DNA from: Octopus sinensis
Taxonomy: Eukaryota
Assembly: GCF_006345805.1 (NCBI RefSeq)
Contig: NC_043010.1
Span: 61,256,001 to 61,320,000, forward strand
Direction of reading: 5' to 3'
DNA length: 64,000 nucleotides
The position numbers and the translations under genes are program-made. The notes below the pieces were generated by a model that saw nothing but the letters and a program-made list of their open reading frames with translations, did not search any database and had not been told where the DNA came from. Positions 5,792 to 57,412 of the stretch are shown here, piece by piece. Position 1 is the stretch's first letter, and every line of letters starts with the position of its first letter.

Positions 5792-6430
5792 CTGCAGCAG
5801 AAGAGAAATTTTCAAATAGGGATGCAGGCCTCCACAGCAACTGGAAATGAGGAACCAGTAACAGTTAAGAAGAAAATAATCGAAAATGGTTTTTATTGTG
5901 ATGTGTGTGAGAAGGTGTTTTCATCTAGGGCCCATGCGAGGACCCATAAACCGGCGCACTTGTTCCTTCGAAAGTTGAAGTGTAGTCATTGTGCAAAACG
6001 TTTCTATCAAACGCATCACCTGAAAAAGCACGAAGCGACCCATTCGTCTGCCCGTCCATATGCTTGTGAGATTTGTAAGAGAGCCTTCAAGGTGGAGTCG
6101 AATATGAAGCTTCATATGGCTGTACATACGAGGGAGGCCAGCCACGAGTGCCCTGACTGTGGTTTTAAGTTCCATCAAGCTGGAGCTTTGACGCGTCATT
6201 ATAGGAGCATTCACCTACGTCAACAGTTTTACGAATGTAATGTCTGTAAAACGAAGTTCAATCGGAAAGAAACACTTCGTTCCCATTTGGATTCTCATAG
6301 GATAGATAATCCATTTAGCTGCAAGCCGTGTGGCATGTTGTTCCCCGATAACAGTCAGTTGGTGAAACACACGAAAGCCCATCACCTCGTCATCAAAGTT
6401 CCGAAATCATCTCAGTCACAACAAAGCTAG
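5792..6430 (+). CDS. C2H2 zinc-finger protein ZNF-1 (6 fingers), terminal coding exon
   Basis: The ORF 5822-6430 encodes six C-x2-C-x12-H-x3/4-H motifs (FYCDVC, LKCSHC, YACEIC, HECPDC, YECNVC, FSCKPC). A TTGGCTTTCAG acceptor ends at 5791 with the frame open from 5792. AATAAA at 6480-6485. Confidence 0.9.
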   Translation: MQQKRNFQIGMQASTATGNEEPVTVKKKIIENGFYCDVCEKVFSSRAHARTHKPAHLFLRKLKCSHCAKRFYQTHHLKKHEATHSSARPYACEICKRAFKVESNMKLHMAVHTREASHECPDCGFKFHQAGALTRHYRSIHLRQQFYECNVCKTKFNRKETLRSHLDSHRIDNPFSCKPCGMLFPDNSQLVKHTKAHHLVIKVPKSSQSQQS

Positions 6431-18985: not shown

Positions 18986-20968
18986 CTAGGTCAACTCTTT
19001 TTGTCGTACAGATGGGATAGGGTTAGGGGGTTTAGGCCACGTAGGGCTCCATCCTGAAGACACTGGGAAACCCCTGGGCCAACTGTAACTGTTGTCCCAG
19101 TGGGATGACATTTGATGGATGTAAGAGGATGACATCTGCATTGGTGTGTTGGAGGTTAAGTGGGACTGAGTCTGCTGATGGGACCCGCTGGATCGCGGAG
19201 AAAGGGATGATGATGGATGGCTGTTGGGGTCCCTGTGGTGCTTGTCCGCATTATTAGAAGAGGCAGATTGATTCGTGGAGTTGGTGTTGCTGCTGCTGCC
19301 TCGATTATGAGATGAATGGGAGTTAGACTTGGAAGGTGGAGTATCGGAGTCATGCTGAGTCAAGGACGTGGCAGAGTAGGTCTTGTCTCCTGGGGTGTTG
19401 CTGCCGCTGCCACCACCACCGCCGCCGCCGCCACCTGCCCCGGCGCCAGGTGAAACAGAAGACCCAGACGGTGGCTGAATGCTACTGGAGGAAGTACCAT
19501 CATAGCTGTAGAGCTTTTCATTATTATTACTGTTGCCAACAGAAGAGACATGACTTCGTTCATGGCTCTTCAAATCTGCTTGGTGAGAGAAAGACTTCCT
19601 ACAAATGGTGCAGTGGAATATGTTCGATGATGACCCTGAAGTGCGGGACACCATTCCGGGGGTGTTCTCCGACATTGAGACTGGTGGAACCACGACCTCT
19701 CCAACGTGAGTCTTCTCATGATTCAGCAATGTAGTTTGGTGTGTGAAAGATTTCTGACATATTGAGCACGTGAAGGGCTTCTCGCCCGTGTGGGTCCGTT
19801 CGTGGTTCTTCAGTGTGGTTTGATGTGCAAATGTCTTCAAGCAGGTTGTGCAATGATAAGGTTTCTCCCCTGTGTGAACACGTTCGTGATTCAACAGAGA
19901 TGTTTGATGGGCAAATGATTTCATGCAGATCGAACATTTGTAAGCCTTTTCAGGTGAATGGCATTGCTCATGGTTTTTCAAGGTGGTTTGATGGGTGAAG
20001 CTTTTCTCGCACTGGCTGCATTTGTACAAACGTTCGCCCGTGTGGATTCGTTCATGAATTGTCAGTGTTGTCTGATGGGAAAAAATTTTGTCACAAACTG
20101 AACACTTATAAGGTTTTTCGCCAGTGTGTACCCGCTGATGGTTAATAAGGGTGGTTTGATGAGCGAACGTCTTCAGACACGTCGGGCAATGATAGGTTTT
20201 CTCCCCGGTGTGAATACGTTGATGGTTGATCAGCGTGGTCTGGTGAGCGAACGCTTTCATACAGATCGAACACTTGAATGGTTTCTCCCCGGTGTGTGTT
20301 CTCGCATGGTTTATAAGCGTAGTCTGATGAGCAAAATTTTTATTGCAGATCGAACACCGATACGGTTTCTCACCAGTATGAATGCGCTGGTGGTTGACCA
20401 GCGTTGTCTGGTGAGCAAACGTCTTGCTGCAGATTGCACAGTTGTAGGGTTTCGCACCAGTATGAACTCGTTCATGGTTTTGTAGAATGGTCTGATGGCT
20501 GAAAGACCTTTCACACATTGAACACTTGAAGGGTTTCTCTCCAGTGTGAACGCGTTCGTGTATCCGCAGATAATCTCGCTGGCTGAATGCCTTTGTACAA
20601 TATTCACAACTGAAGTGGGTCTGACTCAAACCTGCAGCAGACGCACGTTCGTGGTTCGTTAAATTAGCCATTCTTGAAAACCCCTTCCGACAAATATCAC
20701 ATCGATATGGTTTCTTATGGGCCAAACTATGCTGAATGGTCATCTGTCTGTGATGATGATGCTGGTAGGAATTGTTCATAAAACTTATACTGTTGGTAAT
20801 TCCTGTATTGGTTGATGATGTAATCCCTGTATTGGATGATGGCGTACTGGTAGGTGGGGTCTCTGTCTCGGGCTCCGAAGTGGGAGGGTAATTTTTACCA
20901 CCATTGAAATCAAAGGTTCCAAAAAACTGTTTCCCCATTGGGGTGTATACAGACTGTACGGAATACAT
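18986..20968 (-). CDS. C2H2 zinc-finger protein ZNF-2 (660 aa; 12 canonical fingers plus 1 lacking the last His; S/G-rich C-terminus)
   Basis: Uninterrupted ORF with tandem TGEKP-linked fingers. An upstream acceptor TTATTTTAG ends at 21158, and an in-frame stop precedes the ATG. Confidence 0.95.
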   Translation of the reverse strand: MYSVQSVYTPMGKQFFGTFDFNGGKNYPPTSEPETETPPTSTPSSNTGITSSTNTGITNSISFMNNSYQHHHHRQMTIQHSLAHKKPYRCDICRKGFSRMANLTNHERASAAGLSQTHFSCEYCTKAFSQRDYLRIHERVHTGEKPFKCSMCERSFSHQTILQNHERVHTGAKPYNCAICSKTFAHQTTLVNHQRIHTGEKPYRCSICNKNFAHQTTLINHARTHTGEKPFKCSICMKAFAHQTTLINHQRIHTGEKTYHCPTCLKTFAHQTTLINHQRVHTGEKPYKCSVCDKIFSHQTTLTIHERIHTGERLYKCSQCEKSFTHQTTLKNHEQCHSPEKAYKCSICMKSFAHQTSLLNHERVHTGEKPYHCTTCLKTFAHQTTLKNHERTHTGEKPFTCSICQKSFTHQTTLLNHEKTHVGEVVVPPVSMSENTPGMVSRTSGSSSNIFHCTICRKSFSHQADLKSHERSHVSSVGNSNNNEKLYSYDGTSSSSIQPPSGSSVSPGAGAGGGGGGGGGSGSNTPGDKTYSATSLTQHDSDTPPSKSNSHSSHNRGSSSNTNSTNQSASSNNADKHHRDPNSHPSSSLSPRSSGSHQQTQSHLTSNTPMQMSSSYIHQMSSHWDNSYSWPRGFPVSSGWSPTWPKPPNPIPSVRQKELT

Positions 20969-53550: not shown

Positions 53551-53634
53551 TTATGGAGTGTTGTATTGTTTTTTTTTTTGATGTTTGTGTATCAAACTTT
53601 TGTCTAACGAATGTGTGTTTTGTCTTTATTACAG

Positions 53635-53836
53635 ATCCGTAACTATGTGAATGTCCAGTGTCCAACCGGACTCTAAGAAATGTCCAACTCTGACATAACA
53701 TCTCAACACATCCACAGGAATTATTTCTCACTGACGTCGATATAAAACTGATCCCCACCAAACCATAAAGCTGGAGAAGTTTCCATCAGTATCCTTGACC
53801 CCCTTTCTCACCACTCCCTCCTTGCCCCAACTCATT
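53635..53836 (+). promoter_or_regulatory. 5'-UTR part of the ZNF-3 terminal exon with three uORFs
   Basis: Acceptor TTTGTCTTTATTACAG ends at 53634. uORFs at 53645-53650 (M*), 53651-53698 (15 aa) and 53680-53745 (21 aa). Confidence 0.6.
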
Positions 53837-56800
53837 ATGGAGACCCCTATGAGCAATGAAAAACTGATGCATGCTGATTTCTATGGTAAACAGTTTTCAC
53901 CAGCCCCAACTTTGCAAACGCAAAGAATAAGCCACATTTGTGACAAATTGATTCATACTGATATGTACGGGGTCAAAGACTTCCCACAAAGGCATAATCT
54001 TTCCATGCAAAGTATTCCTCACATTCTGGATAAACCTCTCTACCATCCAGAATTCGTGCCAAGGCATCATGGCTTCCAAATGCAGACCATTCCCTCCCAC
54101 ATCCCTGATAAATCGTTCCATCACAGCATGGTTACATATGCGAAAGAGTTCAGTCCAACACAGAACACTCTACCTTCGCCCAAACTGTTGACCCACATGG
54201 TTGACAAGTCCCCTGTTCATTCCACCAGCCCCCTACAGTCTAACAAACAGTTCCTCAGTCCCACACATTCTTCAGTACCACTACAGTCTCCTAAAATGCC
54301 TACAATGATGGACAAGATCTTTCCAGATGGTGGCCTTCTTGACAGTAGTGTGAGTGATGGTAAACAGTATTCTCACCCTCACAGATTGCAGTCGCCTATG
54401 GAGAAGAGTTACCATAGCAACGAGTCACATAGGAACAGCCCGTTGCCATGTGACAAGCAGCTGTCACACCAACTTGACCTGCAGTCTTCATCAAAGCTGA
54501 GCCCAGTGATGGCGAAACAATACTCTGACCCGATGCTTTACCACAAGTCTTTCTTGACGGAGAGTAGCCATCTTTCAGAGGCAAGCCGTAACCAATGCCA
54601 GGAGAACTGCCATGGCCACACTGTTGCCGGGGGTAACAACAGTGGGGGCAGCCATGGGTTACACACTCATAAAACTACTTCCGGTATGTCTGACAAAGCA
54701 TACCACCATCAACAACAACATCATCATCATAGCAGTGGCAGAAGCAGCAGCAGCAGCAGTAGTAGTAACAGTGGTAACACCCCCTCGTATATTCCGTCAG
54801 ATCACACCAACCCCTCTACACCGAAGCCCCCGGACAAGATGTACCCCCAGCACGGATCAGTGAGCATGTCTCCGAAGCTTTACTCTCCGAACCACCACAG
54901 CAATATGCAGCCACAGAAAAGCTACCTTCACAATATCATCACCAGCAGCAGTAGTAGTGGTAGTGGTAGTAGTAGTAGCAATAGTAGTAGTGGTGGTGGT
55001 GGTGGTGGTGGTGGCGGTGGTGGTGGCGATGGTGGTGGTGGTAGGGGTATGAACTGCAGTAATTCCATAACTCCTCCGACCATTACCTCTCCTAGTAGTG
55101 CCAGTGTCCCCAGCAGCAGTCCGGCCCCTTTGAGGACCGACAGCATTGTTGCTAAGCAACCCTACGAAAGCAGCATCCATGATGAACAACAGCAACAACA
55201 ACAACAGCAGCAGAAACATCACAAGCAACATCAGCATAAGCAACACCAACACAAACAACATCGACACAAGCATCACAACAAGCATCATCATCAACAACAA
55301 CAGCCTCAGCTACAACAACAACAACAAATACATGTACAACAGCAACAGCAACAACAGATTCAGGCACAACAACAAATACATGTACAACAGCAACTGCAAC
55401 AACAGCAACAGCTTCAGACGCAGCAACAACTCCAGGTGCAGCAGCTGCAAATGCAACAACAACAACAGCTGCAAGCACAACAAATACAACAACAACAGCA
55501 ACTTCAAGTTCAACAACAACTCCAAACACAACAGCAGCAGCAGCAGCAACAACAACTACAAGCACAGCAACAACAACAGTTGCAGGCTCAGCAGCAGCAA
55601 CAACAATTGCAAGCACAACAACAACAACAGAGGCAGCTGCAAGCGCAGCAACAACAGCTGCAAGATGAACAACATTCACCACAGCAAACACAGAAAGCGC
55701 ATGATCGCCATCAACACAAGCATCATCATCACCATCCACAACAACAACAACAACAGAAATCTCAGCAGGATCTACAAGAACAACAACAAGAACCGCAACC
55801 ACAACAACAACAATACAGCAGTCTACAGAACGAAACCTCAAAATGTTACTCGCAGAACAGCGATTCCCAAGAACAAAGGGAAGACAGCAGCCCTCCAAAA
55901 CAATCTCCCCACTTGCACCACCATCACCACCACCACCATCATCAACAGCACCATCACATTCATCATCACCATCATCATCACCATCTTCAAAACCTATCTG
56001 GGGGCTCCCTCCAGTCGGTAGGAGACACAAACCTAGATCTGAAAGATGTTACCAAAGAAGACCCTTGTGAGAAACCCTATGATTCTTTAACCTGTCAAAT
56101 GACGAACCCCCAGAATTGTTCCGAATCTCTTGAGAAGCTCTACAACATGGATAACGAAGTCAATGAGAAGCCTTCGTTGACGTTACTCGAAGGTACCGAC
56201 CAGATGTTGATGGTAGACGACAAGAAGCCGCTGCAGTCTATGTTGAACAATGAGATGGCTGGTACTGACAGGCCATCTTCATCCTCAGTGAATGCGCAGC
56301 GTTATCACTGTGACTTTTGTGGAAAACAGTTTGCACAAAAGTATGTGCTGCAGATGCACAGACGAACGCATACAGGGGAGAAACCGTTCCAATGCGATTT
56401 CTGCATTCAGCGGTTTGCTCGTAAGGACACGTTACAAATCCATCGAAGAATCCACACCGGTGAGACACCGTTCCAGTGTGACAAGTGCCCTAAACAATTT
56501 GCTCAGGCAGGGAAACTTCAGAAACACAAAAAGCGTTGCCATAACGGCCAGGCCAATTCTGTGACGGGCAACACTCAGAAGTCATTAACGCCTCGGTCAC
56601 AGAATCCAAAGAAAAGAATCTCCGTCACATGTGACATTTGTTTGAAACAGTTTGCTCATCGAGATTACTTAACGATCCATAAAAGGTCACACACTGGAGA
56701 GCGACCGTTTGGGTGTGAATTCTGCCCACAGCGGTTCACTCGCAGGGACATGTTGCAAGTCCACCGTCGGACTCACACTGGAGAGAAGCCTTTTGAGTGT

Positions 56801-57412
56801 CCCATTTGTTTCAAGCGTTTTGCACAGAGAGATAAGCTGCACATACACTCGAGGGTGCATTCAGGGGAGAAACCTTATAAATGTCAGTTGTGTTCGAAAC
56901 AGTTTTCTCAGCGTAACACCCTGGTTGGCCACTTAAGGTCGCACTCGGGAGATCGGCCATATCAGTGTGAAGTATGTTTGCGGAGGTTTGCCCAAAGGGA
57001 TTACTTACGGGTACACACACGATCCCACACTGGGGAGAAACCCTACGGATGTGATTTCTGCATCCAGCGCTTCTCTCGCAGGGACACATTGCAAATTCAC
57101 CGCCGTATTCACACCGGGGAGAAGCCATTCCGTTGTAACTTCTGTGGCAAAGAGTTTGCTCAGACAGACAAGTTGCGACGACACAAACGAACTCATCCCG
57201 AGTTGAAACAAGAGATCAATGCTGGTAACAACAACAACAAAGCCAACAATGGCAACACTGCAGCTGCAACTGGCAACTACGATAGCGCGGCAGCAGCTGC
57301 AGTCGCTGCAATTACAAGTGGCGTAGACAGCGACGGCAGTAAACCTATGTTGGTCCCAGTAAAGACTATTGATGAGTATTTACCTGTAAATAACTATTTG
57401 TGGCTGTTGTAA
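53837..57412 (+). CDS. C2H2 zinc-finger protein ZNF-3 (~1190 aa; 10 fingers; long polyQ/polyH/polyS/polyG region)
   Basis: Single open frame whose first ATG is at 53837 (the ORF track starts at TTG 53795). Ten C2H2 motifs at 56303-57196; Q-rich tract at ~55187-55813. Confidence 0.95.
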   Translation: METPMSNEKLMHADFYGKQFSPAPTLQTQRISHICDKLIHTDMYGVKDFPQRHNLSMQSIPHILDKPLYHPEFVPRHHGFQMQTIPSHIPDKSFHHSMVTYAKEFSPTQNTLPSPKLLTHMVDKSPVHSTSPLQSNKQFLSPTHSSVPLQSPKMPTMMDKIFPDGGLLDSSVSDGKQYSHPHRLQSPMEKSYHSNESHRNSPLPCDKQLSHQLDLQSSSKLSPVMAKQYSDPMLYHKSFLTESSHLSEASRNQCQENCHGHTVAGGNNSGGSHGLHTHKTTSGMSDKAYHHQQQHHHHSSGRSSSSSSSSNSGNTPSYIPSDHTNPSTPKPPDKMYPQHGSVSMSPKLYSPNHHSNMQPQKSYLHNIITSSSSSGSGSSSSNSSSGGGGGGGGGGGGDGGGGRGMNCSNSITPPTITSPSSASVPSSSPAPLRTDSIVAKQPYESSIHDEQQQQQQQQQKHHKQHQHKQHQHKQHRHKHHNKHHHQQQQPQLQQQQQIHVQQQQQQQIQAQQQIHVQQQLQQQQQLQTQQQLQVQQLQMQQQQQLQAQQIQQQQQLQVQQQLQTQQQQQQQQQLQAQQQQQLQAQQQQQQLQAQQQQQRQLQAQQQQLQDEQHSPQQTQKAHDRHQHKHHHHHPQQQQQQKSQQDLQEQQQEPQPQQQQYSSLQNETSKCYSQNSDSQEQREDSSPPKQSPHLHHHHHHHHHQQHHHIHHHHHHHHLQNLSGGSLQSVGDTNLDLKDVTKEDPCEKPYDSLTCQMTNPQNCSESLEKLYNMDNEVNEKPSLTLLEGTDQMLMVDDKKPLQSMLNNEMAGTDRPSSSSVNAQRYHCDFCGKQFAQKYVLQMHRRTHTGEKPFQCDFCIQRFARKDTLQIHRRIHTGETPFQCDKCPKQFAQAGKLQKHKKRCHNGQANSVTGNTQKSLTPRSQNPKKRISVTCDICLKQFAHRDYLTIHKRSHTGERPFGCEFCPQRFTRRDMLQVHRRTHTGEKPFECPICFKRFAQRDKLHIHSRVHSGEKPYKCQLCSKQFSQRNTLVGHLRSHSGDRPYQCEVCLRRFAQRDYLRVHTRSHTGEKPYGCDFCIQRFSRRDTLQIHRRIHTGEKPFRCNFCGKEFAQTDKLRRHKRTHPELKQEINAGNNNNKANNGNTAAATGNYDSAAAAAVAAITSGVDSDGSKPMLVPVKTIDEYLPVNNYLWLL

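Follow-up and report, generated by a model that had tools for sequence, protein, structure and literature searches.

The window analysed here is a 64,000-nucleotide stretch of the Octopus sinensis genome (contig NC_043010.1, positions 61,256,001 to 61,320,000), which carries on its plus strand, at 53837-57412, a single long open reading frame (ORF) for a C2H2 poly-zinc-finger protein of 1191 amino acids (aa). Comparison of this protein with its own ten fingers, its orthologues and its paralogues indicates that its N-terminus, from aa 11 to about aa 191, is most likely a relic of C2H2 fingers, of which units 1 and 2 have been kept, probably as a zinc-independent peptide module. A sequence-only reading of this DNA had already pointed to 53858-54560 as a fossil zinc-finger array; this interval corresponds to aa 8-241 and its frame-0 translation is identical to the peptide reported there. 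According to the translation of the window, and with the ten canonical fingers located by Pfam and a regular-expression scan, the gene is organized as follows.

53837 to 57412, plus strand: complete coding sequence (CDS) in a single ORF, 1191 aa plus stop
53867 to 53950, plus strand: ex-finger unit 1 (aa 11-38), MHADFYGKQFSPAPTLQTQRISHICDKL; Cys1 replaced by A13, Cys2 by Y16 and His1 by Q29, H33 kept
53951 to 54037, plus strand: ex-finger unit 2 (aa 39-67), IHTDMYGVKDFPQRHNLSMQSIPHILDKP, with V46 inserted; Cys1 replaced by T41, Cys2 by Y44 and His1 by Q58, H62 kept
54038 to 54115, plus strand: ex-finger unit 3 (aa 68-93), LYHPEFVPRHHGFQMQTIPSHIPDKS, shortened in octopus
54116 to 54409, plus strand: units 4-6 (aa 94-125, 126-161, 162-191), with the pattern [FY]H...K[EQ][FY]S...LQ[ST]P...[DE]K
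54410 to 54706, plus strand: fading repeat tail (aa 192-290) with scattered DK.[LY].H and KQY motifs (CDKQLSH, AKQYS, SDKAYHH)
54707 to 56302, plus strand: low-complexity spacer (aa 291-822), poly-Ser/Gly, poly-Gln and poly-His
56303 to 56551, plus strand: canonical C2H2 fingers 1-3 (aa 823-905); finger 1 is the nearest relative of units 1 and 2
56624 to 57211, plus strand: canonical C2H2 fingers 4-10 (aa 930-1125)
57374 to 57409, plus strand: extreme C-terminal motif EYLPVNNYLWLL (aa 1180-1191)

Units 1 and 2 compared with the working fingers

The similarity that the sequence-only reading had noticed between the N-terminus and finger 1, in register and with 12/27 identities, is well above chance. 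Unit 1 (MHADFYGKQFSPAPTLQTQRISHICDK, aa 11-37) aligns without gaps to finger 1 (YHCDFCGKQFAQKYVLQMHRRTHTGEK), and this alignment is the top of all position-by-finger pairs in aa 1-260. Its BLOSUM62 score of 57 was compared with a null obtained by shuffling aa 1-260 5000 times and taking each time the maximum over all positions and the 10 fingers: the null is 16.4 ± 4.9 with a maximum of 41, and none of the 5000 shuffles reaches the observed score. When the four ligand columns are masked, unit 1 still scores 51 against a null maximum of 40 (0/5000 shuffles). Shuffled controls, set beforehand as a possible refutation, never equalled the observed value, masked or unmasked.

A similar relation is observed for unit 2, in which both HMMER and hhalign place one inserted residue at V46. 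With V46 removed, unit 2 (IHTDMYG-KDFPQRHNLSMQSIPHILDK) shares 10/27 residues with finger 1 for a ligand-masked score of 41, and units 1 and 2 share 13/27 with each other (masked score 46). Masked scores among the working fingers extend from 21 to 94 with a mean of 48.9, a range that includes the scores of units 1 and 2 against finger 1 (51 and 41); against the other fingers, both units score at most 29. If the ligands are disregarded, the distance of units 1 and 2 to finger 1 is about the same as that between real fingers.

The ligand columns, invariant among the working fingers, offer a meaningful contrast to the units. In units 1-4, A/T/P/H stand in the place of Cys1, Y/Y/V/Y in that of Cys2 and Q/Q/Q/S-P in that of His1, and the Cys-X2-4-Cys...His-X3-5-His tetrad of a functional C2H2 finger is absent from all four. 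The earlier statement that the zinc ligands were lost is right for Cys1, Cys2 and His1, but not for the last His, which stays in units 1-4. The codon differences between finger and unit 1 were verified (TGT/TAT for C>Y, CAC/CAA for H>Q and TGT/GCT for C>A), as previously stated. On the other hand, to call the ligands specifically replaced was an overstatement, given that unit 1 differs from finger 1 at 3/4 ligand positions and also at 12/23 other positions.

Around these columns, each unit appears to keep the non-ligand skeleton of a finger: position 1 is aromatic, a D precedes the Cys2 site, and K-x-F, L16, the last His and [DE]K are retained. The units match a degenerate C2H2 finger by homology in register (F10, L16, His2 and linker) with the ligands absent. 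They also follow one another in tandem with a period of about 28 aa and a TGEKP-like linker, units 1-4 being spaced by 26-33 aa. The linker remnant H-x-x-D-K, equivalent to H-T-G-E-K, reads SHICDK, PHILDK, SHIPDK and THMVDK in units 1-4: [DE]K is retained and T, G and P are gone, CDK of unit 1 corresponding to GEK. Cuttlefish unit 3 (FHSDIYTKDFSPRPGFQLPALTTPMHDKT) likewise retains the register F-x-[C>S]-D-I-[C>Y]-x-K-x-F. Judging from these residues, canonical zinc binding and the beta-beta-alpha fold have very probably been lost in the N-terminal units.

At the DNA level, the similarity between the N-terminal and finger coding regions is limited to one 26-nt patch (E 0.026), which rules out a recent duplication or gene conversion. 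Since, in addition, Tandem Repeats Finder detected no DNA-level repeat in 53837-54706, the resemblance must be old and reside at the protein level.

Profile and structural comparisons

The octopus N-terminus was combined with the single relative obtained for it by word index into a profile, which was searched against 1.84 billion representative proteins and returned five matches at E<=1e-3, all of them C2H2 proteins. Two are its own relatives, the orthologue P0002 and the paralogue P0003. The three others fall on real finger arrays, namely those of an unrelated zinc-finger protein (ZNF) of the fish Gouania willdenowi (E 5.8e-6), a ZNF of Argonauta hians (3.4e-5) and Octopus bimaculoides XP_014771537 (5.5e-4). 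The alignments to these arrays keep the finger register over about 2.7 periods: A13/T41 correspond to Cys1, Y16/Y44 to Cys2, Q29/Q58 to His1, H33/H62 to His2, CDK/LDK to GEK, and the following [FI]H.D.Y to [FY].C..C. Furthermore, hhalign comparison of the three orthologous N-termini with 20 triple-finger segments gave the same register over 56 columns (P = 1.2e-4).

A finger scan was carried out with a hidden Markov model (HMM) of 56 family fingers in which the four ligand columns were blanked, each score being set against 1000 shuffles. It bore out the finger assignment, with 12.1 bits for the octopus N-terminus (0/1000 shuffles). The score is 15.6 bits for cuttlefish P0002, 13.6 bits for P0003 and 13.0 bits for P0006 (0/1000 in each case), and 4.1 bits for P0005 (8/1000). 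Without unit 1, the octopus sequence scores 4.6 bits (4/1000) and the cuttlefish one 7.0 bits (1/1000). When the ligand columns are left in, the scores become marginal (3-8 bits) because the absent Cys and His are penalised.

A Pfam scan of aa 1-291 at E<=10 matched no family, including KRAB, ZAD, SCAN and BTB, and the same scan placed seven zinc-finger families, all around aa 823-1125; FiNZ has no Pfam model and so lies outside this comparison. A PDB sequence search with the three-orthologue profile gave no match at E<=10. Two AlphaFold2 runs, based on alignments of 2-3 sequences and metal-free modelling, gave a mean predicted local distance difference test (pLDDT) of 47 and 55, with a helix at aa 26-43 only and no hairpin or beta-beta-alpha unit. 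This low-confidence helix overlaps the former finger helix and linker. The lack of a Pfam match and of a modelled beta-beta-alpha unit would be consistent with loss of the fold.

Extent of the repeat

The [DE]K openers lie at aa 36, 65, 91, 123(124), 160 and 189, with a spacing of 26-36 aa. In aa 1-420, the motif [DE]K.{1,3}H is found 8 times against 0.38 expected, K[QDE][FY] 6 times against 0.16, and LQ[ST] 5 times against 0.38, counts reached by 0/5000 shuffles each; the further units and motifs announced by the sequence-only reading are hence real features of the protein. That these units are all former fingers was confirmed for units 1-3, but not for units 4-6. Indeed, with the K-x-F anchor and the ligands masked in a fixed ungapped register, unit 1 scores +2.2, unit 2 -7.6 and cuttlefish unit 3 -12.7, whereas the positions at aa 96, 130, 169 and 220 score -36 to -44, level with 8 unrelated K-x-[FY] windows, a background too small for a real null. 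Only units 1-2 of octopus and 2-3 of cuttlefish rise above it.

For units 4-6, the sole link to units 1-2 is similarity within the repeat. When units 1-2 were locally aligned with the remainder of the octopus region, the score was equalled by 5/1000 shuffles, and for units 1-3 against the remainder in cuttlefish by 7/1000; past aa 191, the internal similarity of the tail is weaker (P about 0.02-0.03). At the level of sequence, a fossil array can be regarded as demonstrated for units 1-3, and its transitive extension to units 4-6 seems reasonable.

In units 4-6 (54170-54400, aa 112-188), the former His1 site reads L-[QP]-[ST]-P-[KM] (TLPSPK, PLQSPK, RLQSPM), with the cuttlefish counterparts LQAPK, LQTPK and LQSPQ. 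As a speculation, these recurrent Ser/Thr-Pro sites could be proline-directed phosphorylation sites.

Orthologues and selective constraint

Orthologues P0001, P0002 and P0007 were recovered from cuttlefish-type runs, and P0017, recovered from four runs, represents a second, fairly distant decapodiform-like species. Run SRR20545813 is a larval RNA-seq of Sepia esculenta (PMC10466719), which shows that the cuttlefish N-terminal region is transcribed. The 'ME' start is common to the octopus, cuttlefish and third-species orthologues and the frame is kept in all three, so that the earlier claim of an open frame extends to three coleoids. Because the same ligands are gone in all three orthologues, their loss predates the octopod/decapodiform split.

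Synonymous sites are saturated in every pair (proportion of synonymous differences, pS, 0.53-1.09, and >=0.75 in the unit and finger regions), and only nonsynonymous divergence (dN) can be compared between regions. The proposed check of dN against synonymous divergence could be made for its nonsynonymous part alone, in which units 1-2 come near the fingers. Between octopus and cuttlefish, identity amounts to 90% in the fingers, 78% in units 1-2, 39% in units 3-6 and 20-26% in the other non-finger sequence (spacer). The dN follows the same order, with 0.064, 0.127, 0.56 and 0.86-0.92 for octopus versus cuttlefish and 0.017, 0.033, 0.119 and 0.14-0.19 for the two decapodiforms. Units 1-2 are therefore under strong purifying selection, nearly that of working fingers, and units 4 onward look relaxed, under weaker constraint. 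Since units 1-2 are nearly unchanged between octopus and cuttlefish, they are not simply decaying and have probably been reused; the progressive decay described by the sequence-only reading is misleading for them and fits only units 4 onward.

The protein encoded in the window is absent from a collection of 15 billion sequences, which holds no octopus entry above 50% identity to it. Public octopus annotations seem to lack the gene or to hold it in truncated form, perhaps because of its poly-Gln/His stretch.

One Sepia esculenta contig, L001 (nt 1-1839), matches the full-length L006 (nt 403-1374) at 98% up to nt 975, and diverges from it right after CAC/GTTATT, giving a 292-aa product made of the ex-finger region only; its far end carries an ORF on the opposite strand. 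This product could reflect an N-terminal-only isoform, an unspliced RNA or an assembly chimera.

Paralogues and partial intermediates

Six groups of related genes were found: the window gene with P0002 and P0017; P0003 with P0008; P0006, from O. bimaculoides; P0005, from Argonauta hians, with P0107; P0100 with P0135; and P0058, from the same run as P0002. P0107, P0100, P0135 and P0058 surfaced in a search with the finger region plus tail, which otherwise returned mostly generic vertebrate and insect poly-ZNFs and no outgroup orthologue. In all six groups, D-x-Y-x-K-x-F units precede the finger array. A C-terminal ...N.Y[LM]W[LQ][LQ], in its fuller form [DE][YF].P[VLM]N.Y[LM]W[LQ][LQ]-COOH, is common to the window gene, P0002, P0017, P0003, P0006 and P0058; in P0107 a YLW-like stretch lies elsewhere than at the C-terminus, and the motif is absent from P0005, P0100 and P0135. 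This ending may be a second family-defining short motif with a partner of its own.

Several paralogues have a partial set of ligands (one Cys) or a full GEKP linker. Such intermediates are LCTEICGKDCPQRHSIQMQKFPHLLEKSP and DRCQKEYAHRTTVSQSSKTHTLSGEK of P0003 (EICGKDCPQRH..., RCQKEYAHR...KTHTLSGEK), GDKPIPCDFLGAQFPQIYSLQATHMISGPLGEKPF of P0107, NNQFLQRCYLKTH of P0005 and DMYSKQFAQR of P0006; by eye, DVYTKQFVQNCYLQAQ of P0107 has 9/16 identities to the finger consensus type DICLKQFAQRDYLQIH. The intermediates retaining Cys or His that the sequence-only reading had expected do exist in P0003, P0107 and P0005, but none carries the full set, and they sit in paralogues, not in an outgroup orthologue. 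The ancestral state is thus deduced from similarity and partial intermediates, because none of the relatives recovered showed a fully liganded N-terminal array.

Possible origin and present role of the N-terminal units

These observations would fit a scenario in which the N-terminal finger units lost Cys1, Cys2 and His1 before the octopod/decapodiform split, and also before the duplication that gave the small cephalopod paralogue family with its shared YLW[LQ]L end. Units 1-2 would then have been held by purifying selection nearly as strong as that acting on working fingers. Their present role may be that of a zinc-independent and mostly disordered peptide module with a single helical element, whose function would be to bind another protein or to regulate the factor, the ten C-terminal fingers presumably binding DNA. 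Units 4 onward would be looser copies of the same unit under weaker constraint.

Several points weigh against this scenario. Single-domain profile scores against real fingers are modest (15-22 bits), and the library-wide E-values arise from adding up repeated matches. Units 4-6, taken one by one, carry no finger signal of their own, and no relative with a liganded N-terminal array was recovered, the intermediates being partial. The AlphaFold2 models, built on so few sequences, are little informative. Finally, the invariant His/Cys cluster formed by H33, C35, H40, H53 and H62 leaves room for another metal site.

The mode of origin could differ from the conversion of a whole array, in that one or two finger-1-like fingers would have lost their ligands first and then been duplicated in tandem. 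We hold this to be quite possible, if short of an even case. All units share the derived states expected from such an amplification (Tyr at Cys2, [DE]K without T, G or P, and a post-linker [FY]H), units 1 and 2 are both nearest to finger 1 and to each other, with the masked scores given above, and units 4-6 resemble units 1-2, not any finger. These states are however not uniform in the family, some P0003 units having Cys at the Cys2 position and P0107 keeping Cys1, and parallel change is easy, TGY and TAY being a single step apart. Moreover, finger 1 is at least as near to the units as they are to one another, which would make any amplification very old. Of the ancestral array conversion put forward by the sequence-only reading, the finger homology of the units stands, and the conversion itself is indistinguishable from the amplification of one or two degenerate fingers.

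The His/Cys cluster raises the question of a remodelled, non-canonical metal site in units 1-2. H33, C35, H40, H53, H62 and H70 are invariant in the three orthologues, in a region conserved near the finger level. In addition, a study of ZNF750 describes a finger 'degenerate' by sequence, with a CCHC set, that binds zinc by nuclear magnetic resonance (PMC10465944), which calls for caution before zinc binding is declared lost. Both ZNF750 and the octopus units depart from the CCHH consensus, but only the last His is canonical in units 1-2. A metal site nevertheless appears improbable: no ligand spacing of a known kind is present, P0006, a paralogue, retains QTQRISH while lacking Cys and placing its His residues differently, and AlphaFold2, which does not model metals, gave no compact fold.

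A similarity due to chance or convergence, by which a disordered Ser/Pro/Gln/His-rich repeat would have come to show finger-like K-x-F and [DE]K spacing, could account for the lack of Pfam and PDB matches, for the low single-domain HMM scores and for the later units lying at background, as defined by only 8 K-x-F windows. It would not explain why four different tests (shuffles, profile search, masked HMM and hhalign) beat their controls, why the similarity spans at least two consecutive units including the linker, why it is directed to the family's own finger type (C-D-F-C-G-K-Q-F-A-Q-R, L-Q-x-H-R-R), or why paralogues hold single Cys and full GEKP linkers where predicted; we consider it very unlikely. 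Hardly more credible is a neutral relic, translated and functionless, that has simply not yet met a stop codon. Units 4 onward and the tail are indeed barely above the spacer in conservation (39% versus 20-26%), and indels change unit lengths between species. For units 1-2, however, this explanation is refuted by their 78% octopus/cuttlefish identity and by a dN of 0.033-0.13 against 0.14-0.9 in the spacer with synonymous sites saturated, and the ORF and its start codon are retained in three lineages. Both explanations are poorly compatible with the shuffle, multi-unit and conservation results.

A kept finger relic remains our preferred explanation, and a more specific proposal can be built on it: units 1-2, possibly with the YLW[LQ]L end, may form a zinc-independent effector or partner-binding domain that was derived from DNA-binding fingers before the octopus/squid split and that defines a cephalopod C2H2 subfamily. 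This proposal is tentative, and we would rather doubt it than assert it at present. The new regulatory domain suggested by the sequence-only reading is likewise something that we infer from sequence.

Other features of the gene and the window

The CDS opens at the first in-frame ATG (53837), in a good start-codon context (A at -3 and G at +4), and ends with the stop codon at 57410-57412. At 53620-53640, about 200 nt 5' of the ATG, a polypyrimidine tract followed by ttattacag/ATCC (about 53635) has the look of a splice acceptor, which suggests that the CDS would be a single exon behind an intron of the 5' untranslated region (5'UTR) if this site is used. No similarity was found between the cuttlefish 5'UTR and the region upstream in the window.

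Conservation is lacking in the spacer of about 530 aa, where Gln-rich repeats take up about 180 aa and His runs also occur; in cuttlefish the orthologue is Pro-rich there (SPxPLQSPPPP repeats). Its composition has been wholly turned over between the octopus and cuttlefish lineages.

Two further C2H2 ORFs lie in the window, at 5822-6430 (plus strand, 202 aa) and 18986-20968 (minus strand, 660 aa); neither has an N-terminus that fits the ex-finger profile, nor a C-terminal YLW motif. The first 2 kb of the window have a GC content of 0.27, with an AT-rich simple repeat at 794-1741. ORFs of 150-315 aa on both strands of this repeat (YIYIY.../CIHIY... repeats) were rejected as spurious and are not genes.

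Relation to known systems and significance

Mammalian poly-ZNF genes offer well-documented examples of degenerate fingers that lack one or more Cys or His (PMC2865497, PMC2667407). As in those cases, the octopus region combines finger register and linker with absent ligands, an open frame, a poly-finger protein and a presumed lack of normal fold. However, mammalian degenerate fingers are usually single, have one or two ligands gone, are often lineage-specific and sit in or beside the array. The octopus region, in contrast, is a run of at least 2-3 units with three of four ligands gone, lying at the very N-terminal end and separated by about 630 aa or more from the array, and its units 1-2 are conserved among octopus, cuttlefish and a third coleoid near the finger level.

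In being a conserved, subfamily-defining N-terminal region apart from the array, the octopus units resemble KRAB of tetrapods, ZAD of insects and FiNZ of cyprinid fish (PMC10547256). They differ in that these domains have no sequence relation to the octopus region by Pfam (FiNZ being outside Pfam) and are not finger-derived, and in that they mark families of hundreds of genes, whereas here there are about six paralogue groups and the effector role is putative. The C-terminal dimerisation fingers of the Ikaros family are C2H2 fingers used for protein-protein contacts. They were likewise redeployed beyond DNA recognition, but have kept the four ligands and the zinc fold.

Among animal transcription factors, no class is larger or evolves faster than the poly-zinc-finger genes, and their expansion in cephalopods is among the largest. 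To our knowledge, the gain of non-DNA-binding domains by poly-ZNFs is poorly documented outside KRAB, ZAD, SCAN and FiNZ. Neither a survey of the cephalopod C2H2 expansion (PMC12513265) nor the metazoan ZNF study that defined FiNZ (PMC10547256) mentions an N-terminal relic array, and a conserved, largely ligand-less N-terminal array marking a small cephalopod family appears to be undescribed so far. What is new here is the combination of a run with three of four ligands gone, its N-terminal displacement, its conservation throughout coleoid history and its value as a family marker. The region escapes standard domain scans and public annotation, and so, apparently, does the gene.

The source of the conserved N-terminal module lies in the protein's own type of finger, partial intermediates survive in paralogues, and the constrained units 1-2 contrast clearly with the relaxed units 4 onward. 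These features would make the exaptation of finger into non-finger directly testable on a peptide of about 60 aa. If true, it would be a documented exaptation of a DNA-binding module into a regulatory domain, in the role that KRAB, ZAD and FiNZ fill elsewhere.

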